Shown: positions 4,754 to 46,394, numbered from the stretch's first letter. The stretch is DNA of 51,021 bases from Bugula neritina (GCA_964035545.1 CAXIUT010000056.1:1-51021); one strand, 5' to 3'. Made by a program: numbers and translations. The notes: generated by a model from the letters alone, not told the origin.

Positions 4754-4777
4754 CTTATGTGTTCCCAAGTAGAAAAC

Positions 4778-5942: not shown

Positions 5943-6061
5943 CCACAATCCTACGGCACCAGTTTTTATGAATTGAAATTGGAAAACTGGATTTATCCAC
6001 GGATTGTATGTAGGAACACCCTTGGATATTCAATTATAATCTAGCGCGATAAGGCCCATTC

Positions 6062-7675: not shown

Positions 7676-7679
7676 GCAT

Positions 7680-8333: not shown

Positions 8334-8578
8334 AGCATCCTGCCCAAAACCTGAAACACTGTGTGCCCCTAAGGTACAATGAAAACAGATAATTGGTCGG
8401 GTCATTTGTTTCAGAAAACAAAGCCGACGTTCCAGCACAGCGTTGCGCCCTGCCCTATGCGGCGCACGCGCCATTTATCATTTTTAAGAACAATCTTGGG
8501 AAACAGCCCGTCATTCTTATTGGCACTGGCTGCCCTCTTCTCGGATCAGCTGCGCGTCGTTTTTGACAGGAGCTTTCT

Positions 8579-10845: not shown

Positions 10846-10873
10846 TTTCACATTCCCCTTATTTACAAGGCAT

Positions 10874-10930
10874 TAAAGACTCTTGCTCAAGTGATTAAGA
10901 CTCTAGCTCAAGTGATTAAGACTCTAGCTC
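10874..10930. repeat. 21-bp tandem repeat x~2.7 spanning the parA stop and the parA-parB gap
   Basis: TAAAGACTCTTGCTCAAGTGA / TTAAGACTCTAGCTCAAGTGA / TTAAGACTCTAGCTC. Confidence 0.85.
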
Positions 10931-12295: not shown

Positions 12296-12464
12296 GCCTG
12301 TGCGCCTTGTATCTGCTTAGAAATAGGCGATCGTGTGCCGCCTTTTTACCTAGGTACCACAAAACGTAGCATATGAAAGAATTATCAGCACAAAAACCAT
12401 TTTTTCTAAGGAAAATCAGATCTTTCCACCTGTATAAGGCAGCAGCTGAAGCGGATTTTCAATC

Positions 12465-12779: not shown

Positions 12780-13787
12780 ATGACAACAGCAACGCTGTTG
12801 CCAGACCGGTATCCAAACCGGGATTTCTTTGTGTGCGATGTGTTTGACGCATTGCCCAAAGACGATTTGGCATCCATGGAACACCCGATTTTTTCGCTTT
12901 CAACAAAGCCAGACCGCCGGATTCTGCGCTATGAACACGGGGGCACGCAGATTGAAATTACGCCCTCGGTGCGCGGCCTTGCGACGCTCCATGACAAAGA
13001 CATTCTGATCTTTTGTATCAGCCAGTTGATGGCAGGGATCAATGCGGGCAGGGCGGTTAGCCAGACTTTGCATTTGACGGCGCATGATCTGATGGTGGCC
13101 ACCAACCGTGAAACCTCGGGCGATGGATACAAGCGGTTGCGCGAAGCCTTCGAGCGCCTTGCAGGAACCCGCATCACCACCAATATTGTGACAGGCGATG
13201 TAGAGGCCACCAGCGGCTTTGGCCTGATTGAAAGCTGGCAGGTGGTGCGCAAGACGGGCAGGGGCCGCATGACCCATGTTGTGGTGAAACTGTCCGATTG
13301 GTTGTTTCGTGCGGTCACGTCGAAATCCGTGCTGACGCTCAGCCGTGATTATTTCCGTCTGCGCAAACCATTGGAACGGCGCGTCTATGAAATCGCGCGC
13401 AAACATTGCGGGCGACAACGCGAATGGCGCGTGTCTTTGGAAACGCTGTTGCACAAGTCAGGCTCGAACAGCCCGCGCCGTGTGTTTCGAAAAATGATCC
13501 GCGATATGATCGCGGCTGATCACCTGCCCGATTACCAATTGTTCGAAGAACCCGATGACATTATCCGCGTCACACAACGCGATGTGGTGCTTGATGCGAT
13601 CAGCCGGCCGGTGATCAAACCAGACACGATGGATCGCGCGCGCCAACTGGCCCCTGAATGGGATGTCTATGCCCTGCAAGCGGAATGGATGGCCTGGTGG
13701 GCAGGCAGCGGACGACAGCCGTTGCGCAGTGCAGACGCCGCATTCTTGGGCTGGCTCAAAGGGCGCATCAAACGAGACCGCGATTAG
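12780..13787 (+). CDS. repA: Plasmid replication initiator protein A (RPA-type, Rhodobacterales RepA)
   Basis: PKDDLASMEHPIFSLS, GLAT-HDKDIL, YFRLRKPLERR-YE-ARKHCG; divergent from parAB with iterons between. Confidence 0.9.
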   Translation: MTTATLLPDRYPNRDFFVCDVFDALPKDDLASMEHPIFSLSTKPDRRILRYEHGGTQIEITPSVRGLATLHDKDILIFCISQLMAGINAGRAVSQTLHLTAHDLMVATNRETSGDGYKRLREAFERLAGTRITTNIVTGDVEATSGFGLIESWQVVRKTGRGRMTHVVVKLSDWLFRAVTSKSVLTLSRDYFRLRKPLERRVYEIARKHCGRQREWRVSLETLLHKSGSNSPRRVFRKMIRDMIAADHLPDYQLFEEPDDIIRVTQRDVVLDAISRPVIKPDTMDRARQLAPEWDVYALQAEWMAWWAGSGRQPLRSADAAFLGWLKGRIKRDRD

Positions 13788-15775
13788 ACGATTTCCAGAT
13801 CGTTGAGCAGCGCCGCCCTTGAGGTGTTTTCCACGGTCAGTATATCGCCGCCGCCAAAGTCAAAGATCACATCGCCCCCACTTTCTGTGGCATAGGTCAG
13901 CGCCTCGGCCGCATCTGCATAGCCAAAGTTATCAAGCTGGATCGTGTCGATGTTGTTCTCAAAATCTTTGATGATGTCCGCATCCTCGGTGTGGTCAAAA
14001 TGAAAGATGTCAGCGCCATCCCCGCCATAAAGCGTGTCATCCCCGTGCCCCCCGTCAAAACGGTCAACGCCGTGGCCGCCAAACAACGTGTCATCGCCCG
14101 AGCGTCCATAAAGACTGTCATCGCCATGATAGCTGCGCAATCGGTTGCCCCCAGAGGTGCCGTACATTTTATCATCCCCCGTGTTGGATCCTGTGGCCCC
14201 TTCAAAGCCAGACATCACATCATTGACGGCCCACCCCCCTGATACGCTATCCGCTTCAAGGTCGATGATGATGCCGCCCGAACTGTCGTAGTAGCTGATA
14301 TAGTCAAATCCTGATCCGCCATAGAAGCTTTCGACTCCGCCGCCAACGCGGATGTAATCATCTCCATCCCCGCCATAGATTTTGTCACTGCCTGATCCGC
14401 CATAGAAATCGTCATCGCCCCCATAGCCGCGCAGGGTATTCGCACCTGATGTGCCTGTAATGTTGTCGTTCCCTACCTTTGATCCTGACACGCTCTCAAA
14501 GCTGTCGATCACATCGTTGACCGCCCAAGACCCTGAAACGCTGTTTGCAGCGAGGTCGATGGTGATGCCCCTCGTGCTGTCGTAATAGCTGATGTAATCG
14601 GTGCCAGAGCCACCGTAAAAGCTCTCTACTCCGCCACCGACACGCACATAATCATCGCCGCTGCCCCCGTAGATGGTGTCAGCCCCAACGCCTCCGTAGA
14701 ACCGATCATCCCCGCCATTGCCGTGTAGCGTGTTGCCTTCTGATGTGCCCGTGATGGTATCATTCCCCGTGTTCGATCCAGAGAAGCTTTCAAAGCTGCC
14801 GATCACATCGTTGTTGGCCCAAGACCCCGTGATAAAATCTATGGACAGGTCAACCGTGATGCCGCCCGAAGAAGAGTAATAGTCGAGGTGATCTGTGCCA
14901 TCCCCGCCATAGAAGCTTTCGACACCGCCGCCAACGCGGATATAATCATCTCCATCCCCGCCATAGATTTTGTCCTTTCCAGGGCCGCCATAGAAACTGT
15001 CATCGCCACCATATCCGCGCAAGATGTTGGCCTCTGATGTGCCCGTGATCGTATCACCCCCCGTGTCCGATCCAGACACGCCCTCAAAGCTGTCGATGGT
15101 GTCGTTGTTGGCCCAAGACCCTGAAACGCTGTTCGCAGCGAGGTCGATGGTGATGCCCCCCGTGCTGTCGTAATAGCTGATGTAATCGGTGCCAGAGCCA
15201 CCGTAAAAGTTCTCTACTCCGCCACCGACACGCACATAATCATCGCCGCTGTTGCCATAGATTTTGTCATTGCCCGCGCCGCCATAAAACCGATCATCAC
15301 CCCCATAGCCCTTAAAGATGTTGGCCCCTGATGTGCCATACATCGTGTCATCCCCAGTTTTGGAGCCCCCAACACTTTCAAAGCCGTCAATCAGATCATT
15401 ACTGGCCCAAGACCCCGTGACCGTGTTGGCCGCTAGATTTATGGTGATCCCCTCTGGGCTGTCATAATAGCTGATGTAGTCTTTGCCATCGCCGCCATAA
15501 AAGCTTTGCGTGCCAGCGCTGGCGCGGGCGTAATCATTGCCTGCGCCCAAATGCAGCGTGTCATTGCCACCCCCGCCATAGACACTGTCGACCCCGTCAA
15601 AACCGCAAAGGTAATCGTCCCCCGCACCCCCATAAAGCCGATCGTTTCCATCCCCGCCATAGATCGTGTCATTCCCGTCATACCCAGACAACAGGTCGTC
15701 CCCGTCAAAGCCATAGATCGTGTCAGATGCGGCAGTGCCGTTTAATGTGTCATCCCCATTGCTGCCCACAACCAT
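13784..15775 (-). CDS. RTX/hemolysin-type Ca-binding repeat surface protein
   Basis: Many GGxGxDxxx nonapeptides; five ~98-aa modules; C-terminal D-I-DFE-D-I-L T1SS-type tail; AGGAG RBS supports ATG 15775. Confidence 0.88.
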   Translation of the reverse strand: MVVGSNGDDTLNGTAASDTIYGFDGDDLLSGYDGNDTIYGGDGNDRLYGGAGDDYLCGFDGVDSVYGGGGNDTLHLGAGNDYARASAGTQSFYGGDGKDYISYYDSPEGITINLAANTVTGSWASNDLIDGFESVGGSKTGDDTMYGTSGANIFKGYGGDDRFYGGAGNDKIYGNSGDDYVRVGGGVENFYGGSGTDYISYYDSTGGITIDLAANSVSGSWANNDTIDSFEGVSGSDTGGDTITGTSEANILRGYGGDDSFYGGPGKDKIYGGDGDDYIRVGGGVESFYGGDGTDHLDYYSSSGGITVDLSIDFITGSWANNDVIGSFESFSGSNTGNDTITGTSEGNTLHGNGGDDRFYGGVGADTIYGGSGDDYVRVGGGVESFYGGSGTDYISYYDSTRGITIDLAANSVSGSWAVNDVIDSFESVSGSKVGNDNITGTSGANTLRGYGGDDDFYGGSGSDKIYGGDGDDYIRVGGGVESFYGGSGFDYISYYDSSGGIIIDLEADSVSGGWAVNDVMSGFEGATGSNTGDDKMYGTSGGNRLRSYHGDDSLYGRSGDDTLFGGHGVDRFDGGHGDDTLYGGDGADIFHFDHTEDADIIKDFENNIDTIQLDNFGYADAAEALTYATESGGDVIFDFGGGDILTVENTSRAALLNDLEIV

Positions 15776-15921
15776 GCGGTTTGCTCCTGTGCTGTGCCCC
15801 AAAAGATTGGCAACAGGCTAGGGGTGGGAGTTTGGGGAAAGATGAAAAAGTCCCTGTAATCACGCAAGCGTGCGCCGCTTTTTTGGCATCTTTTTAGGGG
15901 TTTTTTCCTAAACCTTGCGGC

Positions 15922-17290: not shown

Positions 17291-18109
17291 ATGGGGACAT
17301 CTTGCGAGCGAGGCCCCAAATTGTTAAACACCAGTGCTATTGAGACTAAAACTTTTATGAAGGCAATTAGATTGGGTCAACCACTGGCACATAAACTGGA
17401 AGAACGCGGTCAGGCCGTCCTTGGGGCCGACCGAATGGAAGAGCACATCAATTCCATTCCAAGAAGCTTCTGGGTCTATAAAAAAGTCACCGATCTGTTC
17501 TTCGTCACGCTGCTGTTGCCGGGGCTGGTTTTCTGCATAGTAATTCTTGCGGTGCTGAATCCTATTTATAACCCAGGGCCGATCTTCTTTCGCCAGAAAC
17601 GCGTTGGGTTGAATGGCAAAGTCTTTACTATCTTTAAATTCCGCACCGTGGTGAATCCGGGTACTGAAATCCAACTGAGCAATGATCAGCGCAGTAAGCT
17701 GACAGGGCTTGGGGCCTTTATGCGCAACACTCGGGTGGATGAGGTGCCCCAAATCCTGAATGTGTTGCTCGGCCATATGTCGATGATCGGGCCGCGTCCT
17801 GAACAGGTGCAGCTCTATAAGATTTACGCCAGCGCCATGCCGAACTTTTATCTGCGCCAGAAAACCAAACCGGGCATCACGGGGCTGGCGCAATTGCGCT
17901 TTGGCTATACGTCTGATGCCGAAGGGGCGGGCAAAAAGCTGCGCTGGGATCTGGTCTATTTGCAATCCCTTGGGTTTCGCACAGAAACCCATTTGGTAGC
18001 GCGCACCTTTACCTTTGTGATAAAAGGTTTGGCGCGTGTTTTCTTGCGCAATCCGTTTAAACGGACTACCAAAACAACACCGCGCGGACTTCCTTCCAAA
18101 CAGGACTAA
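17291..18109 (+). CDS. Priming polyprenyl-phosphate sugar-phosphotransferase (Bac_transf)
   Basis: F-QKRVG-NG-F-I-KFRT, R-TRVDEVPQ-LNVL-G-MS-IGPRPE, KPGITGLAQ; start uncertain. Confidence 0.88.
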   Translation: MGTSCERGPKLLNTSAIETKTFMKAIRLGQPLAHKLEERGQAVLGADRMEEHINSIPRSFWVYKKVTDLFFVTLLLPGLVFCIVILAVLNPIYNPGPIFFRQKRVGLNGKVFTIFKFRTVVNPGTEIQLSNDQRSKLTGLGAFMRNTRVDEVPQILNVLLGHMSMIGPRPEQVQLYKIYASAMPNFYLRQKTKPGITGLAQLRFGYTSDAEGAGKKLRWDLVYLQSLGFRTETHLVARTFTFVIKGLARVFLRNPFKRTTKTTPRGLPSKQD

Positions 18110-18111: not shown

Positions 18112-19119
18112 ATGAGCAAACATATCCTTTTGACAGGCGGTGCTGGTTACATCGGCTCGCATGTCTATGTGGCATTGGTGGCCGCAGGCTACACCCCTGT
18201 GATTGTCGATAACTTTTCCAACGCGGATGCAGGCACGCCCCAATCGCTTGAAATGATCACCCAAGGGTCTGTTCTGGTGCATGAGTTGGATATCTTGGAT
18301 GCCGATGCCCTGCGCGCGGTGTTCGACCAATATGATTTCGCTGCCGTCATCCACTTTGCCGCCAAAAAGGCCGTGGGCGAAAGCGTGCGCGATCCGCTTT
18401 TGTATTTCGAAGTGAACGGGGCGGGCTTTCTCAACCTGCTGCGCGCCATGTCGAATGCGGATGTGAAAACTTTGGTATTTTCCTCCTCGGCCACCGTTTA
18501 TGGTACGCCTGATATCCTGCCGATCACCGAAGACGCGCCAACAGGCTACACCAACCCTTACGGCTACACCAAGTTGGCAGGGGAACAGATGCTAGAGCAG
18601 ATTTGCGCAGCAGACCCTGATTGGACCGTGGGTGTGCTGCGCTATTTCAATCCAGTGGGGGCGCATTCCTCGGGTTATTTGCGCGAAAGTCCACGGGGTG
18701 CGAAATTCCCCCCTGAAAACCTAATGCCGCGCCTGTTGGATGTGGCTATTGGCAAGGTGGACAGCCTGACCGTGTTTGGGGATGACTATGACACGCCAGA
18801 CGGCACGGGCGTGCGCGACTACATCCATGTGTCGGATCTGGCGCGCGGTCATGTTCTCTCGCTCGATAAGCTGCTGGAAACGGGGCAGGGGCATTTGCTG
18901 AACCTTGGCACGGGGCAGGGGTATTCCGTGTTGGAGTTGATCCAAAACTTCTCTGCCGCTTGCGAGGTAGAGCTGCCCTATAAAATCATGGAGCGTCGCC
19001 CGGGTGATATTGGGGCCTGTTACGCAGACCCCAGCAAAGCCGAAGAGGTGATCGGGTTCAAAGCAGAACACGGTATTTATGAGATGTGCCGCTCCAGCTG
19101 GAATTCTACCCAGACTTAA
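18112..19119 (+). CDS. galE: UDP-glucose 4-epimerase
   Basis: TGGAGYIGSH, HFAAKKAVGES, FSSSATVYG, YGYTK, LRYFNPVGAH, DGTGVRDYIHV. Confidence 0.95.
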   Translation: MSKHILLTGGAGYIGSHVYVALVAAGYTPVIVDNFSNADAGTPQSLEMITQGSVLVHELDILDADALRAVFDQYDFAAVIHFAAKKAVGESVRDPLLYFEVNGAGFLNLLRAMSNADVKTLVFSSSATVYGTPDILPITEDAPTGYTNPYGYTKLAGEQMLEQICAADPDWTVGVLRYFNPVGAHSSGYLRESPRGAKFPPENLMPRLLDVAIGKVDSLTVFGDDYDTPDGTGVRDYIHVSDLARGHVLSLDKLLETGQGHLLNLGTGQGYSVLELIQNFSAACEVELPYKIMERRPGDIGACYADPSKAEEVIGFKAEHGIYEMCRSSWNSTQT

Positions 19120-20045
19120 TCGATGTCCATATCCGCATGAGGGGCCGTCCCATCTTGTGCAAACATACTTTGATAGGCGGCCACGCGGGTTTCAATCAGG
19201 CCTTTGGTGACAATCAGATAGATAAAGATCGACTCTTTCAAAATCACCGCCAGACAGGCCAGCACCCAAATGCCACTGACAAAGCCCTGGGGCAGGCCGA
19301 TCAGTTCAAACACCAAAAGAACCGTCATCCCAAACAGATAGGTCACATGGCGAAAGCTGTGTTTGGCAATTTTGAAAATTCCAGAATTGCGCAACCCCCC
19401 TGCCTTATTGCCGATCAGCTTTTCCGCATCTTCGATCAACGCCTCTTTGCGCGACGCCATAGGGACAGGGTTTTCCGCAGGGGCAGGTGGCCCGCCAACA
19501 GGGGGTGTTTTTGCATAATGTTCCATGCGGTATTGTTCGTGCTGATTGCGGCGCAGCATGGCATCCGCCACGGTTTGGATCAGCCGATTGGCAGGGTTAA
19601 ACGTGGCAAAGCTGGCGGCCCAAGACAGGCATAATATCCACGCGCCCACCCCATCGGACAGGCCCACAGCTACGTGAACACCCGTGGCCACAAAGATCGC
19701 CTGCATGGTGATCGCATGGGCGTATTTATCAAGGAACACACCCGGAATGCTTTGCTGTTGCGTGGCGCGGGCCAGTTCCCCATCCACACAATCCAGCACA
19801 TAGGCGAAATGCAGCAAGAACACGCCGATCAGAAAACCAATGTTTCCCGACCAAAGGAAAATCACCAAACACCCCAACAAACCAATGGCAATCTGCGCAA
19901 AACTCACCTGGTTTGGCGTGATGCGTCTTTGAAATAAAACCCAAGTAATGGGCAAGGAAAATAGGCGATAAACACGACTAAGGTAAGGATCGAGTTCGAG
20001 TTTATGGGCAGGAAACGCTTTGTGTTTGAATTCTGCATAAGTCAT
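19116..20045 (-). CDS. CDP-alcohol phosphotransferase family membrane protein
   Basis: ITPNQVS and D-x2-DG-x2-AR-x8-G-x3-D motif (DCVDGELARATQQQSIPGVFLD); final Asp replaced by His. Confidence 0.85.
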   Translation of the reverse strand: MTYAEFKHKAFPAHKLELDPYLSRVYRLFSLPITWVLFQRRITPNQVSFAQIAIGLLGCLVIFLWSGNIGFLIGVFLLHFAYVLDCVDGELARATQQQSIPGVFLDKYAHAITMQAIFVATGVHVAVGLSDGVGAWILCLSWAASFATFNPANRLIQTVADAMLRRNQHEQYRMEHYAKTPPVGGPPAPAENPVPMASRKEALIEDAEKLIGNKAGGLRNSGIFKIAKHSFRHVTYLFGMTVLLVFELIGLPQGFVSGIWVLACLAVILKESIFIYLIVTKGLIETRVAAYQSMFAQDGTAPHADMDID

Positions 20046-20275
20046 AAAAATCGCGCCTTCTTTACGCGTTTAGCCGCGAATTGCTATTTCGGATATTTCT
20101 CTGTTTGCCAGGCTCTGGCTTAAGAACGGTTCCCGTCAGTATGGTATGTTATCGCCACCACGATTGCGCTTTTATTTCAAAAAATAAGCCATTAAAAGAT
20201 GGCACGTTCAAAAATAGCACTGTAAATGGTCAAGATTATTAAACATTTACACGATATAAAAAATGGAGAAACGTT

Positions 20276-21583
20276 TTGAAAAAAGTATACGTCGGCATGA
20301 GTGCGGACCTTCTGCACCCAGGTCATATCAACATCCTGAAAGAAGCGGCTAAATTGGGTCAAGTTACCGTTGGCTTGCTGACAGATCGCGCCATCGCATC
20401 CTATAAACGTCTTCCTTACCTCGATTACAAACAGCGCAAGATCGTTGTCGAAAGCATGGGCGATGTGTTCGAAGTGGTTCCACAGGAAACGCTCGACTAT
20501 CGCCCGAACCTGAAAGAACACAAACCAGACATCGTGGTGCATGGCGACGACTGGCGCACAGGCGTTCAGTCCAAAGTCCGCCAGCAAGTGATCGACACTC
20601 TGTCCGAATGGGGCGGGGAACTTGTTGAAGTGGGCTACACCGATGGTATTTCCTCCACACAGTTGAACCGCTTTCAGCGCGAAGTGGGCACAACGCCTGA
20701 CCGTCGCCGTTCGCAACTGCGCCGCCTTCTCGAAGCCAAAGACATGGTGCGCATTCTGGAAACACACTCTGGTCTGTCTTCTTTGATTGCAGAGAATTTG
20801 GAAGTGAAAGACGAAAACGGCCGCAACCGCAGCTTTGACGGCTTCTGGTCTTCGTCCCTGACGGACTCCACTAACAAAGGCATGCCAGACATCGAAGCCG
20901 TGGACACCACCAGCCGCGCGGCATCCGTGACACAAATCTTTGAAGTCACAACCAAGCCGATGATCTATGACGGCGACACTGGCGGCAAGCCAGAGCACTT
21001 TGCCTTTACGGTGAAAACGCTGGAGCGTCTGGGCGTGTCTGCGATCATCATCGAAGACAAAATCGGTCTGAAAAAGAACTCGCTCTTTGGCAACGAAGTG
21101 GCGCAGAACCAAGACAGTATCGAAGACTTCTGTCACAAAATCCAAGTGGGTAAGGAAGCCCGTGTCTCTGAGGACTTTATGGTGATCGCACGTTGCGAAA
21201 GCCTGATCCTTGATAAAGGTATGGATGATGCGATCGAACGCTCTAAGGCCTATTTGGCTGCGGGTGCTGACGGCATCATGATCCACTCGCGCAAAGCAGA
21301 TGGCGCGGAAATCATGGAATTCGCCAAACACTACCAGACGTTTGACACCACATGCCCACTGATCGTTGTGCCGTCCTCGTTTGATAAAATCACCGAAGAC
21401 GAATTCCAAGCGGCAGGTATCAACGTTGTGATCTATGCCAACCACATGCTGCGTGCAGCCTATCCTGGCATGTACAAAACAGCCGAGACGATCTTGAAAA
21501 ACCAACGCGGCTTTGAGGCGCGTGAACATTGCATGTCGATCAAGGACATCTTGGAAATGATCCCGGGGACCAAAGATGCTTAA
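20276..21583 (+). CDS. pepM: Cytidylyltransferase-phosphoenolpyruvate mutase fusion (Fom1-like architecture)
   Basis: N-terminal HxGH CyTase ([22 protein letters not shown]); PepM signature EDK-x5-NS ([10 protein letters not shown]), DGDTGG, IYANH. Confidence 0.93.
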
Positions 21584-22703
21584 GCCAGAAACCTTTCTGG
21601 GCAGCCTCACAGATGCGGGCGTTTCGTTTTTTGCAGGGGTCCCTGACTCCCTGCTCAAACAAATCTGCGCCTGCATCACCGATACGCTGCCAGCCCAAGA
21701 CCACATCATCGCCGCCAATGAAGGCGCGGCCGTGGGCTTGGCCATCGGTCATCACATCGCCACAGGTAGTGTGCCGCTGATCTATATGCAGAACTCGGGT
21801 CTGGGGAACATCGTCAATCCGATCATGTCCTTGGCCAGCAACGAAGTCTACGCGATCCCAATGCTTGTCATGATTGGCTGGCGCGGGGAACCGGGCGTCA
21901 AAGACGAACCCCAGCACGTGCACCAAGGTCGTGTGACACCGGCCACGCTCGATGCAATGGAAATGCCCTATGTTGTGTTGTCCGATGATGATGCAACAGC
22001 GCGCACCCAAGTGGCCGAGGCTGCGCAAAAAGCCCGTGCAGGCAATATGCCTGTGGGGATCTTGGTGCGCAAAGGCACGTTTGATAGCTACACTGCAACC
22101 AAGGCACCTAAGCCTGATCTGACACTAGAACGCGAAGACGCGATCATTCAGGCGGCAGATGCCACGCAGGACAATGCTGCCATCGTCTGCACCACAGGCA
22201 TGCCAAGCCGCGAGCTGTTTGAATACCGCGCGCGGGCAGGGGGCAAACATGAAACTGACTTCCTTACAGTTGGGGGCATGGGTCACGCCAGCCAGATCGC
22301 GATGGGTATTGCGCTCAAAAAGCCGAACCGCCCGATCTATTGCTTTGATGGGGACGGCGCATCTTTGATGCACATGGGCTCTATGGCGATTGTGGGCAAC
22401 AGCGGTTTGTCAAACTTTGTGCACATCGTCTTTAACAACGGCGCGCATGAATCTGTGGGCGGGCAACCGACCGTGGGCTTTGACATCAACCTTACCCAAA
22501 TCGCAGATGCCTGTGGTTATGTGTCTGCCGTGTCCGTGGACACAGCCGATGCGGTTGGTCCTGCCATTGCAGCGGCCCAAGCCGCAGATGGCCCCGCGTT
22601 CATCGAAATCCGCGTATTGCCGGGGCACCGCGCAGACATCGGACGCCCAACCACAACACCACAACAAAACAAGACAGCCCTAATGGGTTTTTTGAAGGAC
22701 TAA
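21576..22703 (+). CDS. aepY: Phosphonopyruvate decarboxylase
   Basis: [39 protein letters not shown] motif DGDGA...NN; overlaps the pepM stop. Confidence 0.93.
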
Positions 22704-22705
22704 TC

Positions 22706-23842
22706 ATGACGGACAGCCCCATTTACATCTCTGGCCTTGGCGCCTGCACCACAGGTCTGGCAGAGCTGAAAGCACGCTATGCGCCAAAGAAGACACTGCT
22801 TGTCACGGGACGCGGCTCTTATGCTGCTTCGGGTGCACAAGCGGCGGTTGAGGCTGTCTTTGATCCTTCGGAAACCGTTCGGTTTTTTGATTTTGAAGTG
22901 AACCCAAAAATGACCGACGCCCAACGGGGCGTCGAGATTGCCCGCGAAGCTGGGGTCGATTTGATCCTAACCATCGGCGGCGGCAGCCCGATGGATATGG
23001 GTAAAATCATCAAAGCGTTTTACACCGACCCGTCCAAGGCCGAGGCCCTTGTGCGCGGTGAAGTGCAAGCCGAAGATCCAGGCATTCCCCTGATCGCCAT
23101 TCCAACCACAGCGGGTTCTGGCAGCGAAGCCACCCATTTCGCGGTGGCCTATATCGGCAAAGATAAATTCTCGCTCGCCTCACAACTGTTGTTGCCAGAT
23201 GCGGTTGTGCTGGATGGCAAATTGCTGGCCACCAATTCCCCCTATCAGCGTGCGGTCAACGGCCTCGATGCCATGGCCCAAGCGATCGAGAGCTACTGGG
23301 CCGCAGGCTCCACCGAGGAATCCCGCGGCTATTCCCGCGAGGCGATTGAAAAGACCGCTAAGCACCTGCCTTTGATCGTGAAAGAGGGCAACGACGAAAC
23401 CCTGCAAAACATGATAGAGGCGGCCAATCTGGCGGGCAAAGCGATCAACATTTCCAAAACCACCGCAGCCCACGCCTATGCGTATGCGTTTACGGGCTTT
23501 CACGATGTGCCCCACGGCCATGCGGTTTGGATGACATTGCCAGACATCTTTCAAATCCACGCCACGGTTGATCCAGAACACGTGACAGACAAACGCGGCG
23601 CAGACCATTTGTCCGCAATCATGAAAGACACCTGCGACATTCTTGGGCTGCAAGGTCCAAACTACGGCGATGAGATGAAGGCATTTTTGCACGGCCTCGA
23701 CCTCAGCTCTGACATGATCGAAATGGGCGCAAAAACCCCAGAGCAGCGTAAATTTGTATCCCAACAAGTGAACATGCAGCGCATGGGCAACAACCCTGTA
23801 GGCCTCAGCGAAGAGCACGTGGCCTCTATCTTTAAACTCTAA
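22706..23842 (+). CDS. Phosphonoacetaldehyde reductase (group III Fe-dependent ADH, PhpC/FomC-like)
   Basis: GGGS-MD-GK, AIPTTAGSGSEAT, AGKAINISKTTAAHA, VPHGHA; follows pepM-aepY. Confidence 0.85.
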   Translation: MTDSPIYISGLGACTTGLAELKARYAPKKTLLVTGRGSYAASGAQAAVEAVFDPSETVRFFDFEVNPKMTDAQRGVEIAREAGVDLILTIGGGSPMDMGKIIKAFYTDPSKAEALVRGEVQAEDPGIPLIAIPTTAGSGSEATHFAVAYIGKDKFSLASQLLLPDAVVLDGKLLATNSPYQRAVNGLDAMAQAIESYWAAGSTEESRGYSREAIEKTAKHLPLIVKEGNDETLQNMIEAANLAGKAINISKTTAAHAYAYAFTGFHDVPHGHAVWMTLPDIFQIHATVDPEHVTDKRGADHLSAIMKDTCDILGLQGPNYGDEMKAFLHGLDLSSDMIEMGAKTPEQRKFVSQQVNMQRMGNNPVGLSEEHVASIFKL

Positions 23843-23869
23843 GGCCCGCCCCACAATTGGGGCCTTAGA
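23838..23869 (+). terminator. Stem-loop after the Fe-ADH gene (terminator or RNA stabiliser)
   Basis: TCTAAGGCCC...GGGCCTTAGA 10-bp stem; T-tract weak and displaced. Confidence 0.45.
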
Positions 23870-23892
23870 CTCTGTTTTGAAATGATTTTATT

Positions 23893-26331
23893 ATGGCGAC
23901 ACCTGCAAAGAAGAAACCTGCTGTAACATCAGCGGCGTCAAAAAAAGCAGCCGCCGCCAAGAAAGCAGCGGCGGCCAAAAAGGCCAAATCTGTAAGTGTG
24001 AAAAGTAAACTTTATACGTTTGGGGGCCGTGTCGAAAAGACATTGGCCAATCGGCTGACACACCGCAGTGAAAAAGCAGGGCGTTACGCCGAATACAAAG
24101 TGCAAAAAGGCGGATTGGCGCGGATCAAACCTTTCCGCATGGGGCGGCTTGCGGATTGGCAATTGTCAAAGAACCGTCTTGAAAAAGCGATGGTTTACAA
24201 TGCCGAAGTGGGCTTGGCCGAAGGCGGCTGGAACCAAGACAGCAAATGGCGCAATCGTGTGCTGCTGACAGGGATTTTGGCTGTCAAACTGGGCAAAGAT
24301 TCAATGGCTGCCAGTTGGTTGGCCGCTGGGGTGAATTTACAAGCCAGCAAATTGATCGCACGCAGCTATACCTATGGCTACACCGATCAATTCCGAGCGT
24401 GGCTTAAAGATCATGAAGAGGCCATAGCCACCTCTGATGGTTGGAAAAACATCCTCAAGACGCAGGACCGCAATCAGGTGCTGGCCTATTTGGTGACCTT
24501 TTTGCACACTTTGGGGTCCAAAGATTTAACGCTCGCTTTGGTGTCCAAATTTGGTCTGAAGGGCCATGATGGGCTAATTAGTATTCTTAAAGACCGTGCC
24601 ACACCCAAAGGTGTTACCAACCAGCTGTTCAATCAAATCGACATTGAACAAAGTACAGGATCAGAGCAAGCGAACCGCGTTTTAACCAACCTGAGCAAAC
24701 GGGTTCTATATGCTGCTAAAGTGACCCAACCCGCCAAAGCCACTGCGCCCAAAATATCGTTCTTTTATGCGCAAGAGCCTGTGACACAGCTTGGCAAACA
24801 TATCAAAGGCCTGAACACGCGCGCAAAATCAATGATGACGGAACGAGGGCGCAGTTTTGAAAAGCGCCATCACACGTTCACATCCGCTCTAAGCGCGCTG
24901 CAAGGGGCTGCGGACGTCGCACAAAAACTGCTGGCGGCCCATGAAAATTCAGCCGATCCAGAAGGCACAAATGGGCATGTGATGTTGGCGGAACATGTTC
25001 TTGCCCTATCTGCGCAGCATCTGGATTTTGATCCGAAAAACGTTGAATACCGCCTTAAACCAGCAAGCAGTGTGGCCGCCCGCGCTCATCAGATGGTCTG
25101 CCTCTACACGCAGGCGCTGCAACTTGTTAAAATGCTCAGCGCAGCGCAAGCAGGCCGCGATTTAACCAAATCAAGCATCGCTCCCTATCACACGGATCAA
25201 AAGCAGCTTTGGTTCTCTGATGACGAACAGGCCATTCTGAACCAAGACCCTTCAACGCAGTTCACCACTAACGCTTATTTCCAAGTGCTGTGCGATGCCT
25301 TCTGGCTGTTTGGAACCGGCAAACCCAATGCGGCCAAGGCTCTTTTGGCTATTGTGGTTAAGGATCAAGAGCCTTTCTATCGCAGTTTGAGCGACCGATC
25401 TGGCCCGACAAAACTGTTTGTGGGGGGCTATGGCTGGACAGGATCCAGCGCTGTGTTTGACAGCTTCTTGGGCTATCCAGAGGCCGAAGAAATGCCCGGC
25501 ATTGGGGATGACGCCTTTATCAATGAGGGCGCAGAATCTGAGCCGATGCTACACCAAGGGCCCGCCAGCCTAATGTCGCTGAATGCCAGCATTCAGAAAT
25601 GGGGCACGTTTTCAAAAACAGCGCTGATCCAGTTCTTTAATCTGTGGGTCCTGCGCGCCAATCACAAAAGCTATTTTGAGTATAAAACCGTTGGCGCCAA
25701 TGCGAACATTGCCTCGATCATTGGCGAAGACAGCTATTACCGCATCGTGATGAAACTGTTTTATGACTATGTCCGTTTGCGCAAAAACCCAAAGCGCAAG
25801 TCGTTGATGCCCCGGGCCCTGACCCAGTTCGAACAAAACATCGTGCACGCCATGTACCCCGATGACAAAAGCATTGTGCTGTTCAACAATTCGGTCAACA
25901 CGGATAAGATCAAGACCTTGAACCTGATCTCTGGGCGCTGTGTTTACATCGCGGTGAACCGCAACATCCTTGATCAATTCGCTGATCAGAAACGCTTTAA
26001 CGTGTTCCTCGACACGACGGCGGAAAAATTTGGCGAAACCAAAGTGGAAAAACTACAGGCGTTTTTGGACACATCTGAACAGTTGAACGCAAAGGGCGCG
26101 GGCTCTTACGAGATGATCAACCTGATGTTCGAAGACTGGATTTTGGACGCAGACTACCGCGAAAAAGTGACGACCCAGATTTTCGGATATTATGATGCCA
26201 CCCTAGAGGCCAAAAATCTTGATCCTTCGGTGTCGCGCAAAAACATCGACATGTTTGGGGATTACCTGAACGAGCAGGAAATTAGCGTTCTCAATAAGAT
26301 CAAAGCCAAGCATCCAAAGCTCGCTGTGTGA
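23893..26331 (+). CDS. Hypothetical 812-aa protein with Lys/Ala-rich N-terminus and C-terminal sulfotransferase/P-loop-like domain
   Basis: LFVGGYGWTGSSAVFD loop, YIAVNRNILDQF and LMFEDWI match the sulfotransferase-fold pattern; co-oriented with the phosphonate operon. Confidence 0.6.
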   Translation: MATPAKKKPAVTSAASKKAAAAKKAAAAKKAKSVSVKSKLYTFGGRVEKTLANRLTHRSEKAGRYAEYKVQKGGLARIKPFRMGRLADWQLSKNRLEKAMVYNAEVGLAEGGWNQDSKWRNRVLLTGILAVKLGKDSMAASWLAAGVNLQASKLIARSYTYGYTDQFRAWLKDHEEAIATSDGWKNILKTQDRNQVLAYLVTFLHTLGSKDLTLALVSKFGLKGHDGLISILKDRATPKGVTNQLFNQIDIEQSTGSEQANRVLTNLSKRVLYAAKVTQPAKATAPKISFFYAQEPVTQLGKHIKGLNTRAKSMMTERGRSFEKRHHTFTSALSALQGAADVAQKLLAAHENSADPEGTNGHVMLAEHVLALSAQHLDFDPKNVEYRLKPASSVAARAHQMVCLYTQALQLVKMLSAAQAGRDLTKSSIAPYHTDQKQLWFSDDEQAILNQDPSTQFTTNAYFQVLCDAFWLFGTGKPNAAKALLAIVVKDQEPFYRSLSDRSGPTKLFVGGYGWTGSSAVFDSFLGYPEAEEMPGIGDDAFINEGAESEPMLHQGPASLMSLNASIQKWGTFSKTALIQFFNLWVLRANHKSYFEYKTVGANANIASIIGEDSYYRIVMKLFYDYVRLRKNPKRKSLMPRALTQFEQNIVHAMYPDDKSIVLFNNSVNTDKIKTLNLISGRCVYIAVNRNILDQFADQKRFNVFLDTTAEKFGETKVEKLQAFLDTSEQLNAKGAGSYEMINLMFEDWILDADYREKVTTQIFGYYDATLEAKNLDPSVSRKNIDMFGDYLNEQEISVLNKIKAKHPKLAV

Positions 26332-26343
26332 AGAGCGGGTTAG

Positions 26344-27581
26344 GTGGTAAAATCAAGGTCGAAACCTAAAGGGAAAGATCGCAAAAACAGTCGCTTGCTG
26401 CGCTTTCTTGAATCAGATCACGGCCTGTTTACGCGTGCTCTTACATCGGGTTTGGCATGGGGAGGCGTTCTGCTGGTCACAGGCAGCACAGCTTTGGCCA
26501 AAGACATCGCGGCAGAGGCAATTAGGCCGCGCAATTTCAAACGCACGTTTCGACGCGGGGCGTGGTACGCAAAATTTGGCTGGCCGCGCTGGACCTACCT
26601 GGCAGACCCGTTTTTCACCGTGACCGAAGGCATGGCACCTGACACGTTGCAGGCGTTGTTGCGGTTTTGGGATCGGCGTTGTGCACATTTGAAAGAGCCA
26701 GGCCGCAGTTTGGAACGGCTGTGCATTCTGGGCGCTTTGATCGACAGCACAACACGAAACACAACACAGGATCGGGGCCAACGGGTACAGTTTCAAACAG
26801 ACCTGACCTCCCAAATCACACAGCTGCGGGCCACGGCAGCACCAGCGCTTAGCACGCCGTCCCCGCGCGATGTGGACCACGATTTTGCCGTTGATGATGC
26901 GATCACGGCTTTGTCTGATTTCACCGCTCTTTTACCCCTGAAACCTATCGCTGGTTTGCGATGGCTGGCACGTTTTTGGGGTTGTACCGTGAACAACGGT
27001 TTCTGCCGTATGAATTGGATGTGGATCTGGGGCTGTATTGGGACCCTGACATCCATGAAAAGGTGCTGAGCTTGTGTAAAGCATCAGATGATTTTGATGT
27101 GCGCCATGTGGAAACCCAACACATCATTCCCCCCTTTGGCGCGCCTGACACACATGTGGTGTTGATAAAGCTGATCCATCGCACGGGGCTGTCGTTTGAT
27201 CTGTTCTACCACCGAGAGGAATCTGGCCAGCTGTGGCACGGATCAGGCCTACACCGCTGGGAAAACACACCCTTTGAGTTGGTTCCCTATGACCTGCATG
27301 GGCTGTCTGTGTTGGGTCCAAAGGATGGGGCTCGATACTTGACCGAGAGCTATGGTGATTGGCAAACGCCTGTTGCGAATTTTGATTACAATACCCAGAT
27401 GCCCAATCTGGTTTGGGCGCCCAATTTTGCAGGGATGGCCCATACGGCAAAGCGGCTGCATCTGTTGCACGACCAGCAAGACACCACGCTTTATGACGCA
27501 CTGTTAAAGCGTATTCTGGCACTGCCTTTTTTGGCCCAATCGCCCCGAACGTGCACAGATGGGGGTTATGAGGAACAATAG
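26344..27581 (+). pseudogene. LicD-family nucleotidyl/phosphotransferase split by a single-base frameshift
   Basis: ORF 26344..27069 overlaps ORF 26961..27581 (AGTFLGLYRE-F-P-ELDVDLG; YLTESYGDWQTP). Adding one base near 26919-26945 joins them into ...LLPPETYRWFAMAGTFLG. Confidence 0.75.
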
Positions 27582-27901
27582 TGGAACAAGAGGGCGCTTG
27601 ACGGTTTTCTCATTTCTGGGACGTAGGGGTCGAGTCCGGTAGGGGGCGGGATCGTATCATAAGCTCTTCTGCCTCGCTATTTTGACCACCTATATTCGCC
27701 AGTGATAAGAATATGAGCCCATCCTAGGGGCGAGATGTGCGCCAAGAGATCTGGGGAACAATCCAACCCTGCGCGTTTTCGCTGCGCAACAGCTTTGCCA
27801 AGTTGATCTGTGTTCCAGTAAATAATAATGGCGGCTAAAAGGAGAGTATCTCAAAGCGTGGGGCAATTGTGTTTTTGTTTTGAGGCTGGCATCTATTTTG
27901 G

Positions 27902-28564
27902 ATGTCTGGAACGGCCAACATTATTCAACTGAAGATCCGCTTGCTGGGGCTCAGCCCCATGATTTGGCGGCGTGTTCTGGTGCCTGTTTCAATCAGTTTG
28001 CGGGAACTCCAAGGAATTATTCAGGTGGCGATGGGGTGGGAAGGCATTCATCTTTACGAATTTGACATTCGTGCCGTGCGGTATGGGTCGTTTGAATTGT
28101 TTGCAGCAAATCCCGATTTGCCTTTGGCAGAGTTTGTTTTTCGCCAGAATGAGACTTTCTCGTATATTTATGACATGGGAGATCATTGGTCCCATGAAAT
28201 TCGCGTCGAGGGATTTGGTGCTGCTGACCCAAAGAAGACCTATCCCGTTTGCACGGGCGGTTCTGGTGCCTGCCCGCCTGAAGATTGCGGTGGAGTGGAG
28301 GGGTATCTTTACCGCCGTGATGAAGCGGGAGGGTATGACGCGTGGCAGGACTTCGGCGTTATGGTTGAGTGGCTAGATGGCCTTACCAAACAGGACACGA
28401 CTGGTCTGACGGTGCGAGATGTGCTGACCGACGATGTTGAGGCTGCGATGCAGCGTGTCGTTGCGCGGGAGCCGTATCAGGCGAGCAAGTTTTCACGCAA
28501 GCGGATCAATCAGGGGTTCCGGGACGGCTGCCATCTAGAATTGATGCGTCAGCAGATGTGGTAG
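27902..28564 (+). CDS. pRiA4b ORF-3-like protein
   Basis: Same protein as 878..1540. Confidence 0.9.
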   Translation: MSGTANIIQLKIRLLGLSPMIWRRVLVPVSISLRELQGIIQVAMGWEGIHLYEFDIRAVRYGSFELFAANPDLPLAEFVFRQNETFSYIYDMGDHWSHEIRVEGFGAADPKKTYPVCTGGSGACPPEDCGGVEGYLYRRDEAGGYDAWQDFGVMVEWLDGLTKQDTTGLTVRDVLTDDVEAAMQRVVAREPYQASKFSRKRINQGFRDGCHLELMRQQMW

Positions 28565-28681
28565 GCGTGTTCGAAAAGGACCGGTTTCGGACGGGGCGTA
28601 AAAACGTGTCCTTATATTATCTTGACGCAGTTCAGGACAGGCATATAATTACGGACATCTATTTTTTAACAGAAACCACCG
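28565..28681 (+). promoter_or_regulatory. Putative res site overlapping a sigma70 promoter for resolvase-transposase
   Basis: TTGACG (28622)-16 bp-TATAAT (28644); repeated TGTCC/GGACA half-sites around AT-rich cores. Confidence 0.6.
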
Positions 28682-29260
28682 ATGTCCAGAATATTTGCTT
28701 ATGCCCGCGTCTCGACCTTTGAACAGGAGACAGAAAACCAGGTTCTCGAAATCGAAGCGGCTGGGTTCAAAGTAGCGCCACACCGGATCATTACTGAAAC
28801 GATCTCCGGATCACGTGCCATCGCGCAACGCCCAGGCTTTGCCCGCCTGATGGAGAAAATGGAACAGGGTGACGTGCTGATTGTCACCAAACTGGATCGG
28901 TTGGGTCGCAATGCAATCGATGTCTCCAGCACCGTAACCAAATTGGAAGAAAACGGCATTCGAGTTCATTGCCTTGCCCTGGGGGGTGTTGATCTGACCA
29001 GCTCAGCGGGAAAGCTGACAATGGGGGTCATCAATTCCGTGGCCCAGTTTGAACGCGACTTGCTGATCGAGCGCACTCAATCCGGCTTGGCTCGCGCAAA
29101 AGCAGAGGGTAAGCCTCTTGGTCGCCGCCCTAAACTGTCACTGGATCAGCAAGATGAGGTGAAGGAAAAACTTGCAGCTGGCGAAACGATCTCAGGCATT
29201 GCCCGTGATATGAAAACCAGCCGCCAAACAATTATGCGTGTAAGGGATCAGGTACAATGA
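28682..29260 (+). CDS. Serine resolvase/invertase
   Basis: YARVST, KLDRLGR; ATGA overlap with the transposase. Confidence 0.95.
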   Translation: MSRIFAYARVSTFEQETENQVLEIEAAGFKVAPHRIITETISGSRAIAQRPGFARLMEKMEQGDVLIVTKLDRLGRNAIDVSSTVTKLEENGIRVHCLALGGVDLTSSAGKLTMGVINSVAQFERDLLIERTQSGLARAKAEGKPLGRRPKLSLDQQDEVKEKLAAGETISGIARDMKTSRQTIMRVRDQVQ

Positions 29261-30642
29261 AGATGCACATCACCCTCCAGCTAACCGATCCAGACGGCGT
29301 TGTTCACGACCATCAGGTCGCGGTTCTGGACAAGGAATTTAGCACCTCTGGTGAGGTTGGCCTGTCCATTTCAGAAAGCAAGGGTTTGCTGCTCGCGTTG
29401 CAAACGGAAATCACATCTGCCCAAACACAAGCCTATTGCACGGCACACTCGTCGTGCCCTTGCTGTGACCGCAAGTTGCGGAGGAAAGGCCATAAAAACA
29501 TCCGCTACCGCACGGTTTTTGGTGACATTCCTATTCACAGTCCACGGTTTTATCATTGCGCATGCCAAGACAAGGCTGCCCAGACCTTTAGCCCCCTGAC
29601 TGCATTATTACCCGATCATGTTTCTCCAGAAATGCTGTGGCTGGAAAGCAAATGGGCGTCTTTGGTTTCGTACGGTGCTAGCGTGAATTTGTTGAAAGAT
29701 GTGCTGCCGATTGACAAACAACTGACTGCGGAGACCGTGCGCCGACATTTGGGATGCGTTGGCAAGCGCTTGGAAAGCGAATTGGCTGACGAACAATATA
29801 GTTTTGTTGAGACCAGTGCCTATGAACGTGAGCGGCTTCCAGTCCCAGACGGCCCGATCACGGTTGGCATTGATGGTGGCTATGTACGTTCGCGCAAGAA
29901 GGGCCAATCCCATTTTGAAGTGACTGTGGGGAAATCAATTCCTACTGATCGTCCAAATCGTTACATTGGCCTTGTGCAAAGTCATGATGAAAAACCCAAA
30001 CGCCGACTGCATGGCATATTGAAAGATCAAGGCTGGCAGGAAAACCAGCATGTGACGTTCATGACCGATGGGGGCGACAGCGTGATCAATATCGCACGGG
30101 ATATGGCTCCTGCATCCACACATATCCTAGACTGGTTTCACATTACGATGCGCATCACGGTGATGGGACAATATATAAAGGGCCTGATCCATCATAATCC
30201 GGACGAGGGCGAAGAAATGGCCCGGATGCTGCGGCAGATCAAAGGATATCTGTGGAATGGCAATCTGCATAACGGGCAACAGGTTATCGAAGATCTAGTC
30301 ATGGATCTTGATGGGGTTGAAACGGAATATGCCAGCATCAAGGCGCTACGAAAGGCAGCAGGTGAATTCCAGACATACATCACAAATAACGCCTGGATGA
30401 TCCCCAACTATGCTGAACGCCGCCGTTATGGCGAACGTGTCTCGACCGGATTTGTCGAAAGCACCGTCAATACCGTCGTCGGAAAACGCTTCTGTAAACG
30501 TCAACAAATGCGCTGGTCAAAAACAGGTGCACATCTCATGCTGCAAACCCGGACTCGAACTTTGGACGGAACGTTGCGGGATAAATTCGAACAATGGTAC
30601 CCGGGAATGAAAGACAGCAATCAAACCAAATGCGCAGCATAA
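29257..30642 (+). CDS. ISKra4-family (Mutator-like DDE) transposase
   Basis: GIDGGYVR, TDGG, HILDWFHI-MR, STGFVES-VN, KRQQMRWS-GAH; N-terminal CxxC...CxC. Confidence 0.9.
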   Translation: MKMHITLQLTDPDGVVHDHQVAVLDKEFSTSGEVGLSISESKGLLLALQTEITSAQTQAYCTAHSSCPCCDRKLRRKGHKNIRYRTVFGDIPIHSPRFYHCACQDKAAQTFSPLTALLPDHVSPEMLWLESKWASLVSYGASVNLLKDVLPIDKQLTAETVRRHLGCVGKRLESELADEQYSFVETSAYERERLPVPDGPITVGIDGGYVRSRKKGQSHFEVTVGKSIPTDRPNRYIGLVQSHDEKPKRRLHGILKDQGWQENQHVTFMTDGGDSVINIARDMAPASTHILDWFHITMRITVMGQYIKGLIHHNPDEGEEMARMLRQIKGYLWNGNLHNGQQVIEDLVMDLDGVETEYASIKALRKAAGEFQTYITNNAWMIPNYAERRRYGERVSTGFVESTVNTVVGKRFCKRQQMRWSKTGAHLMLQTRTRTLDGTLRDKFEQWYPGMKDSNQTKCAA

Positions 30643-30674
30643 ATGCCCCACGCTTTGGGGTGCTCTCCTCTTTC

Positions 30675-37203: not shown

Positions 37204-37514
37204 TCAACACTGCTGCGTGAACCAGTTGGTTTGATCAAAGTTTCGGCTTTGACGTTTGAAGGACTTTAACATTACGAGTTTTGAAAGTGCTACAATTTGT
37301 TATGATTGTTAGCCTTTCAAAATTTGTAATGTATTGGTTTGTTAAACCGATACGCTAACTTATTAACATAATAAATATTAGGCGTCTTATCCCGAGGCGC
37401 TAAAACTAATGTAATTTTGTTGAAATTTACCTACTCTGCCGGGTGATATTTGGCCGATTTGGCGCCTATTCGTCGGCCCCTCTTAGAAGGAGAGCACCCC
37501 AAAGCGTGGGGCAT

Positions 37515-39475: not shown

Positions 39476-39592
39476 CGGTGGTTTCTGTTAAAAAATAGAT
39501 GTCCGTAATTATATGCCTGTCCTGAACTGCGTCAAGATAATATAAGGACACGTTTTTACGCCCCGTCCGAAACCGGTCCTTTTCGAACACGC

Positions 39593-46390: not shown

Positions 46391-46394
46391 GCAT

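Follow-up and report, generated by a model that had tools for sequence, protein, structure and literature searches.

A predicted 2-hydroxyethylphosphonate operon on a small capsule plasmid of probable Roseobacter-group origin

A 7.3-kb operon (20276-27581) carrying a predicted pathway for 2-hydroxyethylphosphonate (HEP) was analyzed in a DNA stretch of 51,021 nucleotides (nt) from Bugula neritina (GCA_964035545.1 CAXIUT010000056.1:1-51021), which is referred to as a whole as the window. With a probability of roughly 0.55, this operon makes HEP and passes it to a surface glycan in the form of CMP-HEP, its cytidine monophosphate (CMP) conjugate. The enzyme activities, the acceptor and the final structure were predicted from gene identities, motifs and conserved gene neighbourhoods, which are described below.

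The phosphonate genes and their predicted product

Three translationally coupled phosphonate genes open the operon and occupy positions 20276-23842 of the plus strand. The first of them (20276-21583, +) starts with TTG, five bases after a GGAGA ribosome-binding site, and encodes a protein of 435 amino acids (aa) in which a Fom1-type cytidylyltransferase (CyTase) domain (residues 1-137; PF01467, E 8.7e-13) is fused to a phosphoenolpyruvate (PEP) phosphomutase, PepM or Ppm (residues 140-435; PF13714). The phosphomutase scored 412 bits with TIGR02320, for which the equivalog cut-off is 319.55, and matched the structure 5unc (E 1e-43). At residue 260 it carries the EDKxxxxxNS motif, which separates Ppm from isocitrate-lyase-like relatives. 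In the CyTase domain, the HxGH motif was found as HPGH at residue 14, and the solved CyTase domain of Fom1 (5x3d) was matched over 134 residues (E 6.8e-55). The domain, the motif, the fusion to Ppm and the homology to Fom1 were thus all observed, as would be predicted for a Fom1-type HEP cytidylyltransferase.

The second gene (21576-22703, +) begins inside pepM, with which it shares 8 nt. It encodes phosphonopyruvate decarboxylase (Ppd/AepY), with 490.6 bits for TIGR03297 (cut-off 312.5) and the GDG...NN thiamine-diphosphate motif in place. Only 2 nt past its stop codon, the third gene (22706-23842, +) encodes a group III (Fe/Zn) alcohol dehydrogenase (ADH; PF00465, E 1.4e-35; PF25137), a predicted phosphonoacetaldehyde reductase of the PhpC-like kind. 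Sulfoacetaldehyde is an isostere of phosphonoacetaldehyde. The top match of the ADH in the PDB was 6jko/6jkp, and 6jkp is a sulfoacetaldehyde reductase in which Zn is bound through an Asp/Gln/His/His set identical to that of the window protein (PMC13576164). Among the cluster-linked ADHs, Gln was present at the second of these metal-ligand positions (D/Q/H/H) in 46 of 65. Family, intact metal site and position after pepM and ppd all agree with a putative PhpC/FomC-type enzyme. An earlier note on this DNA had named these and the neighbouring genes, had described the tight coupling of the CyTase-PepM, Ppd and ADH genes, and had likened the HxGH domain to that of Streptomyces Fom1; each gene was found where it had been placed, and both observations held.

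Ten other open reading frames (ORFs) were rejected: a 517-aa ORF antisense to pepM (20192-21745, -), without family match and considered spurious, and nine further overlapping or antisense ORFs, which matched no family and were not taken as genes. A promoter and terminator scan of the operon gave counts that were not above shuffled expectation.

In the proposed pathway, PepM would convert PEP into phosphonopyruvate, which Ppd would decarboxylate to phosphonoacetaldehyde. The PhpC-like dehydrogenase would turn the latter into HEP, and the CyTase domain fused to PepM would combine HEP with cytidine triphosphate to give CMP-HEP. Fom1 has been shown to cytidylylate HEP to CMP-HEP, as the work of Cho (2017) is cited in PMC6697681. 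Domains of an aminotransferase, of MpnS/HEPD-type enzymes, of Fom3 and of Fom4 were not found in any ORF of the circular replicon that the window represents (see below), in agreement with the earlier note, which had reported the absence of an aminotransferase for 2-aminoethylphosphonate (AEP), of MpnS and of Fom3/Fom4. HEP, activated as CMP-HEP, is a well-supported prediction, reached by inference from these genes.

Additionally, the three genes were compared with those of other organisms. A scan of one genome per species detected 80 loci with the CyTase-PepM fusion, at 59-76% identity and in many phyla. Together with a further locus (L081) and the window they form a set of 82, the ORFs of which were searched by iterated profiles. 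The 80 loci were chosen by similarity to the window PepM and the partner frequencies describe that clade only; since many of the contigs are incomplete, all partner counts are lower bounds. Ppd was detected in 76 of the 82 loci, and the ADH gene in 68. From 81 fusion proteins a quick maximum-likelihood tree was built, a pepM phylogeny of the kind that the earlier note had proposed; in it, the window protein was the first branch of a six-member clade with full support by SH-aLRT. The other members come from an Alteromonadaceae metagenome-assembled genome (MAG), two alphaproteobacterial MAGs, Rhodobacteraceae HTCC2083 and Pacificibacter. Phyla are mixed in this tree, as would be expected of a mobile module. 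A literature search returned no prior note on pepM in HTCC2083, and a "pepM" match in an Epibacterium paper was false, the string being "PepMap".

The interpretation put forward earlier had two halves. HEP-CMP biosynthesis is sustained by the scores above the equivalog cut-offs, by the match to 5x3d and by the ADH following Ppd in 68 of 82 loci, while the transfer of the activated group to a glycan or lipid is plausible from gene context only.

Candidate transferases and a sulfotransferase-fold partner

Chemically, CMP-HEP is an analogue of a cytidine diphosphate (CDP)-alcohol, and its phosphonyl group could be moved by CDP-alcohol-type phosphotransferases to a hydroxyl of a surface glycoconjugate. 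Two candidates are encoded near the phosphonate genes, namely a divergently transcribed membrane phosphotransferase and, if its gene is intact in the cell, a LicD-like enzyme. The acceptor glycan would be built on a lipid carrier, which is consistent with the neighbouring genes for an initiating phosphoglycosyl transferase (Bac_transf) and an epimerase, and would be exported by the ABC-2/KpsE-like/Wza machinery of the plasmid. The 812-aa sulfotransferase-fold protein would act as a dedicated tailoring enzyme of the pathway.

The glycan as acceptor is suggested by gene context, that is, by the gene orders of two other Rhodobacteraceae loci and by the exporter. In the Pacificibacter MAG (L003), the order is sulfotransferase-like gene, LicD-like gene, ABC-2 permease, ATPase, CDP-alcohol phosphotransferase, pepM, ppd and adh, followed on the opposite strand by Bac_transf and the epimerase. 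In HTCC2083 (L004), the exporter, the CDP-alcohol phosphotransferase and the three phosphonate genes are accompanied by Bac_transf, the epimerase and a canonical sulfotransferase. In both, the CDP-alcohol phosphotransferase gene stands between the ABC-2 exporter and pepM. Moreover, the exporter proteins of the window were 34%, 33% and 58% identical (tblastn) to those of the exporter that lies beside the phosphonate genes in L081. The pair formed by Bac_transf and the epimerase adjoins the phosphonate genes in L003, L004 and L086 as well.

The first candidate, a CDP-alcohol phosphotransferase of 309 aa (19116-20045, -), is a multi-pass membrane protein by its transmembrane-like segments and matched PF01066 with E 4.4e-11 and 43.8 bits, against a gathering score of 22. 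Its gene is divergent from pepM, from which it is separated by 230 nt. AF2299 and IPCT-DIPPS were the nearest solved relatives, and PgsA, PIP-synthase and AIP-synthase the nearest NCBIfam models. The gene was also present in 17 other CyTase-PepM loci, often immediately after the ADH gene.

The second candidate is split in the window. An N-terminal part (26344-26938, +), in the frame of a 241-aa ORF (26344-27069), matched residues 53-210 of the Pacificibacter protein (L003:5913-7064), which is an intact, single LicD-like ORF of 383 aa. A C-terminal part, the LicD-family nucleotidyl/phosphotransferase domain, extends over 26919-27581 (+) and includes the listed 206-aa ORF (26961-27581), which was 39% identical to residues 211-375 of the same protein. 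The conserved strand before the GTxLG motif could be read only upstream of the listed ATG, in the second frame; therefore, the one-base frame change found by frame comparison lies within a T4-A-C4 run at 26930-26938 (+). On its own, the C-terminal ORF matched PF04991 with E 0.028, under the Pfam threshold. By comparison of relatives, membership of this family is nevertheless secure at the family level: 15 of 16 aligned LicD-like relatives matched PF04991, the G/T/L/R/D/D columns of the GTxLGxxR...DxDxD core were invariant, and the profile of the relatives matched the catalytic domain of fukutin-related protein (6kaj) with E 9e-19. LicD-like genes were detected in 16 other CyTase-PepM loci; like the CDP-alcohol phosphotransferase, they are a genuine, recurring partner of the fusion. 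The flanking transferases announced in the earlier note were recovered in part. The CDP-alcohol phosphotransferase does lie beside pepM, but the LicD-like gene does not adjoin the ADH gene, from which it is separated by the gene of the 812-aa protein, and the LicD ORF that had been seen is the C-terminal part only.

The assembly around the run was compared with an independent contig set, the Logan unitigs of run X1 (depth 2-4), a run that may derive from the sample that also yielded the window. These unitigs stop at 26938 and resume at 26935, exactly at the borders of the C-run. This is the pattern expected for reads that disagree on run length, and it is suggestive of run-length heterogeneity. 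In the X1 Logan contig, one base fewer than in the window was observed at 26334, in the 12-nt spacer between the gene of the 812-aa protein and the LicD-like gene, so the window assembly and the X1 read set differ by single-base insertions or deletions. The frame change in the LicD-like gene may thus be an assembly error or reflect heterogeneity.

Between the ADH and the LicD-like genes, a gene that the earlier note had not mentioned (23893-26331, +) encodes an 812-aa soluble protein without match in Pfam or NCBIfam. Its N-terminus is rich in Lys and Ala; a helical domain of about 440 aa follows, and then a C-terminal domain (approximately 480-812). The AlphaFold model of the C-terminal 330 residues had a mean pLDDT of 82.5, and in Foldseek it matched TPST2, Stf1 and the CurM/OLS sulfotransferase domains with probability 1.0 and a template-modelling score of about 0.5. 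A stand-alone relative of 319 aa in Marinospirillum (L024) matched PF13469 (E 1.5e-8). The C-terminal domain is accordingly modelled with a sulfotransferase fold. No family in Pfam or NCBIfam was matched by the helical domain, and TPR-like leads for the N-terminal domain from the Atlas (scores of at most 0.83) were too weak and were not relied on.

This family is rare. Its six-member profile retrieved 17 proteins and a single-sequence word-based search with the sulfotransferase-like domain only one (5.8 billion proteins). All seven contexts retrieved by searching with the 812-aa protein (L081-L087) adjoin CyTase-PepM, Ppd and Fe-ADH genes, and the gene was also present in four of the PepM-seeded loci (L003, L024, L030 and L031). 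Judged from these neighbourhoods, no other partner is as specific to the three phosphonate genes as this family. In the literature searched, no paper was found that connects pepM and HEP with a sulfotransferase.

The partners of the family vary between loci. At L082:1977-8611 and L085:6411-13062, five genes form a compact operon with housekeeping genes on both flanks: those for CyTase-PepM, Ppd and Fe-ADH, one for a sulfotransferase-fold protein of 622 aa, and one for a TagF-like protein (378 aa in L082, 387 aa in L085). These islands look like a minimal, self-contained HEP module without a LicD or PF01066 gene. L081, L082 and L083 encode small TagF-like proteins that are mutually homologous. 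In L084 (3022-9447), three LicD-like paralogs of 529, 424 and 368 aa were found instead, beside the phosphonate genes and the sulfotransferase-fold gene; each carries an N-terminal extension of about 200 aa, as does the split gene of the window.

The nucleotide-binding loop of the family was examined in a structure-model alignment of six rows (A4), from which L031 was left out. It reads GG(Y/F)GW(S/T)GSS, with Trp or Tyr at the position that was compared with enzymes using 3'-phosphoadenosine-5'-phosphosulfate (PAPS). A conserved Arg is kept, and the residue eight positions later is Asp in all six rows. Canonical PAPS enzymes have Lys/Arg in the 5'-phosphosulfate loop and Arg...Ser for the 3'-phosphate, and the comparison serves as a lead only. 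A bolder proposal, considered rather unlikely, is that the family is dedicated to the CMP-HEP pathway and carries out undescribed chemistry. It might then sulfate the free 2-hydroxyl of surface-bound HEP, which would give a sulfo-phosphonate decoration, or it might have been re-tooled, with Lys/Arg replaced by Trp and Ser by Asp, to bind a nucleotide that lacks the 3'-phosphate, for instance CMP-HEP. In both cases it would build a new HEP-containing anionic surface polymer with its TagF-like or LicD-like partner.

The canonical sulfotransferase of HTCC2083 (PF13469, E 4.9e-28) lies at L004:3260-4324, a few kb from the phosphonate genes, and is accompanied by genes for a DegT aminotransferase, a WbpM-like dehydratase and a DUF6044 protein. 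Sulfation and HEP addition may thus go together in this clade even without the 600-800-aa family.

The plasmid and its other genes

Bases 1-12306 of the window recur without any change, in direct orientation, at 38716-51021, so the window is a circle of 38,715 bp read 1.3 times, and the features within 1-12306 are present twice in it, the circle having been read past its origin. The replicon carries its own initiator, RepA (12780-13787, +; PF10134, E 2e-97), and partition genes for ParB (9856-10851, -) and ParA (10916-12295, -), both assigned by family matches. It is therefore a plasmid, as the earlier note had maintained. The DNA of the RepA/ParAB module was about 74% identical to RepA plasmids of about 69 kb from Phaeobacter and 71% identical to a Salipiger plasmid, and the host is most likely a bacterium of the Roseobacter group.

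A complete capsule kit of the ABC-transporter type is encoded on the circle, with an ABC-2 exporter, YjbF, YjbH, a Wza-type outer-membrane exporter, a small phosphoglycosyl transferase and an epimerase. The exporter comprises an ABC-2 permease (5169-5948, -; Pfam), a 537-aa protein (6062-7675, +) and an ATPase (7680-8333, +; Pfam). The 537-aa protein has no Pfam match and two transmembrane-like segments (about 173-198 and 504-535), and it is probably a KpsE-like co-polymerase; among the loci compared, its sole relative was the 444-aa protein of the L081 exporter (33% identity). The initiating phosphoglycosyl transferase (Bac_transf; 17291-18109, +; PF02397, E 1.3e-44) is followed by the NAD-dependent sugar epimerase (18112-19119, +; PF01370, E 4.7e-52).

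Next to RepA, a 672-aa protein with RTX calcium-binding repeats is encoded at 13784-15802 (-). Within its gene, at 14022-15497, five tandem repeats of 294 nt were observed, 64-86% identical to one another.

Downstream of the operon, perfect inverted repeats of 2,829 nt were detected at 27841-30669 and 37488-40316. They bracket a gene for a 1,466-aa TagF/GDPD protein together with IspD-like and SDR genes for CDP-alditol synthesis. Each repeat encodes a PRiA4_ORF3-like protein, a serine resolvase and a 461-aa transposase-like protein. In run X1, the depth of the repeat unitig was 12.3, against about 3.9 for the flanks, and several different loose ends converge at 27841; additional copies of the repeat are therefore present elsewhere in the sample of X1. 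A short segment at 27533-27617 was 94-98% identical to Leisingera and Phaeobacter plasmids and was also detected in the marine metagenome run X2, where the continuation diverges at 27842. This segment resembles an insertion target or a small module shared between plasmids.

No near-identical plasmid was detected when 19000-27700 was compared by megablast with PLSDB, where only fragments of about 85 nt were returned. In the same database (72,556 plasmids), the full fusion was present on only two replicons, one of 437 kb from Fulvitalea and one of 167 kb from Segatella. The survey of pepM on Rhodobacteraceae plasmids, which the earlier note had also proposed, detected no true PepM on any of those in PLSDB.

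Alternative readings and known systems

Several observations weigh against the delivery of CMP-HEP to a surface glycan. The LicD-like gene is interrupted in the window assembly and cannot be read there in a single frame. The CDP-alcohol phosphotransferase carries DCVDGELARx8GxxxDxxxH, in which the fourth Asp of D-x2-D-G-x2-A-R-x8-G-x3-D-x3-D is replaced by His. Most characterised PF01066 members make lipids and not glycans. The best NCBIfam match of the ADH, TIGR03405, reached 156.9 bits, far under its cut-off of 423.7; PhpC-type enzymes are reported to be highly divergent (PMC13576164). The chromosome could carry a gene for an AEP transaminase, only the replicon being in view. Finally, the exporter and polymerase genes stand apart from the operon and a 2.8-kb inverted repeat abuts on it, so these pieces may not cooperate.

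One competing product is a phosphonolipid. The CDP-alcohol phosphotransferase would use CMP-HEP to place the phosphonyl group of HEP on diacylglycerol or a comparable lipid alcohol, the head group would be a hydroxyethylphosphonate counterpart of that in phosphatidyl-alcohol lipids, and no glycan would be decorated. PF01066 contains chiefly phospholipid synthases, as do the nearest models named above, this gene is the intact transferase of the window and is kept in all three Rhodobacteraceae loci, and Ppm clusters with CDP-alcohol transferases have already been predicted to make phosphonolipids ("Burkholderiales_CDP-OH", PMC8942020; Nostoc, PMC5987646). This outcome is nevertheless regarded as unlikely, if the most serious of the competing ones, given that AF2299 and IPCT-DIPPS include enzymes with soluble acceptors, that the gene shares an operon with a glycan-type ABC-2 exporter and adjoins Bac_transf in L003 and L004, and that the LicD-like and TagF-like partners point toward glycan or polyol-phosphate acceptors. 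The same TagF-like partners could also indicate a polymer resembling teichoic acid, with HEP built into the backbone through its own hydroxyl (poly-HEP, or mixed chains of alditol-phosphate and HEP). TagF-like or LicD-like enzymes would then use CMP-HEP as TagF uses CDP-glycerol, and the sulfotransferase-fold protein would cap or modify the chain. HEP does offer both a phosphonate and a free hydroxyl, the five-gene operons of L082 and L085, and also L081, L083 and L087, join the phosphonate genes to those of the sulfotransferase-like and small TagF-like proteins, and the plasmid carries the 1,466-aa TagF/GDPD protein with its CDP-alditol synthase genes. We consider such a polymer improbable, however, since no poly-HEP-type polymer is known, since the TagF-like gene of the window lies 3 kb off, behind the mobile element and on the opposite strand, and since the similarity of the small TagF-like proteins to the polymerase of the window is marginal (24% over 120 aa).

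The interrupted LicD-like gene and the motif change raise the question of whether the module is decaying cargo that makes no surface phosphonate in this strain, the more so as the perfect repeat element begins 260 nt downstream of the operon. Against this, the other six reading frames are intact with their catalytic motifs in place, and the frame change falls in a homopolymer run where the independent contig set breaks or differs, as would an assembly error or heterogeneity. The terminal His was found only in the window, L003 and L004; in 15 other motif-bearing, cluster-linked homologues the fourth position was Asp or Glu in 13 and Ala in 2. Being common to two other Rhodobacteraceae, the variant is not a recent lesion, which counts against decay, and this explanation is considered improbable. 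A diffusible antibiotic of the fosfomycin type, with CMP-HEP as a transient as in Streptomyces, is very improbable. The CyTase domain does bear a very strong resemblance to its Fom1 counterpart, but a Fom3 radical-SAM methyltransferase, a Fom4 epoxidase, a FomD-type hydrolase and a resistance gene were not found on the replicon, and the neighbouring genes all serve glycan synthesis or export. The transfer of HEP to a surface glycan is kept as the preferred reading.

To our knowledge, few cultured producers of HEP-glycans have been reported. With the predicted HEP-CMP pathway, two candidate transferases and capsule export on one 38.7-kb plasmid, strains that carry it and strains that lack it would offer a clean genetic comparison. 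Being strictly linked to the CyTase-PepM, Ppd and ADH genes, the orphan sulfotransferase-fold family acquires a pathway context and points to an uncharacterised tailoring step, while roles in resistance to phage or grazers and in marine phosphonate cycling are speculation.

The system resembles Fom1 of Streptomyces wedmorensis in the order of PF01467 and PF13714, in the HxGH motif and in the Ppd and PhpC/FomC-type reductase that follow. It differs in lacking Fom3, Fom4 and FomD and in being surrounded by glycan and capsule genes in place of those for a secondary metabolite, so CMP-HEP is presumably used by transferases and not methylated. It also resembles the HEP-type phosphonoglycan clusters of Stackebrandtia nassauensis and Glycomyces (PMC8942020), where Ppm, Ppd and PhpC without an AEP transaminase lie beside polysaccharide genes and an exported glycan with HEP esters has been predicted; HEP esters on the exopolysaccharide of Stackebrandtia provide the precedent (PMC8942020). 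Of all ppm neighbourhoods, 8.5% are of the HEP type (Li and Horsman, 2022, PMC8942020). By contrast, the window system, known from its genes alone, belongs to a Gram-negative, probably Roseobacter-type host, shares its 38.7-kb plasmid with capsule genes of the ABC-transporter kind, and has in addition the CDP-alcohol phosphotransferase, the LicD-like gene and the sulfotransferase-fold partner.

The PntC/LicD system (Rice et al., 2019, PMC6697681) and the pneumococcal LicC/LicD system for phosphocholine share with the window a CMP-activated head group and its transfer to surface glycans by the LicD family. The head group predicted here is HEP and not AEP or phosphocholine, the CyTase belongs to PF01467 (Fom1) and not to PF12804 (LicC/PntC), and LicD is split in the window assembly. 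PF01467 is fused to 23.6% of Ppm enzymes, and LicD-like transferases have been described in phosphonate clusters (PMC6697681). The Ppm clusters of Burkholderiales and Nostoc (PMC8942020, PMC5987646) likewise combine a Ppm-nucleotidyltransferase fusion with Ppd and a PF01066 transferase, but they encode an AEP transaminase and a 2-oxoglutarate oxygenase for (hydroxy-)AEP, whereas the window encodes an ADH, for HEP, amid glycan export genes. The RepA plasmids of about 69 kb from Phaeobacter are alike in RepA, ParA and ParB, and the window plasmid differs in its PepM, which none of the Rhodobacteraceae plasmids in PLSDB encodes. HEP-type clusters, PF01467-Ppm fusions and LicD and CDP-alcohol phosphotransferase partners are therefore already known; what is new is that they reside on a small capsule plasmid of the Roseobacter type and that a rare sulfotransferase-fold family is tightly linked to them.

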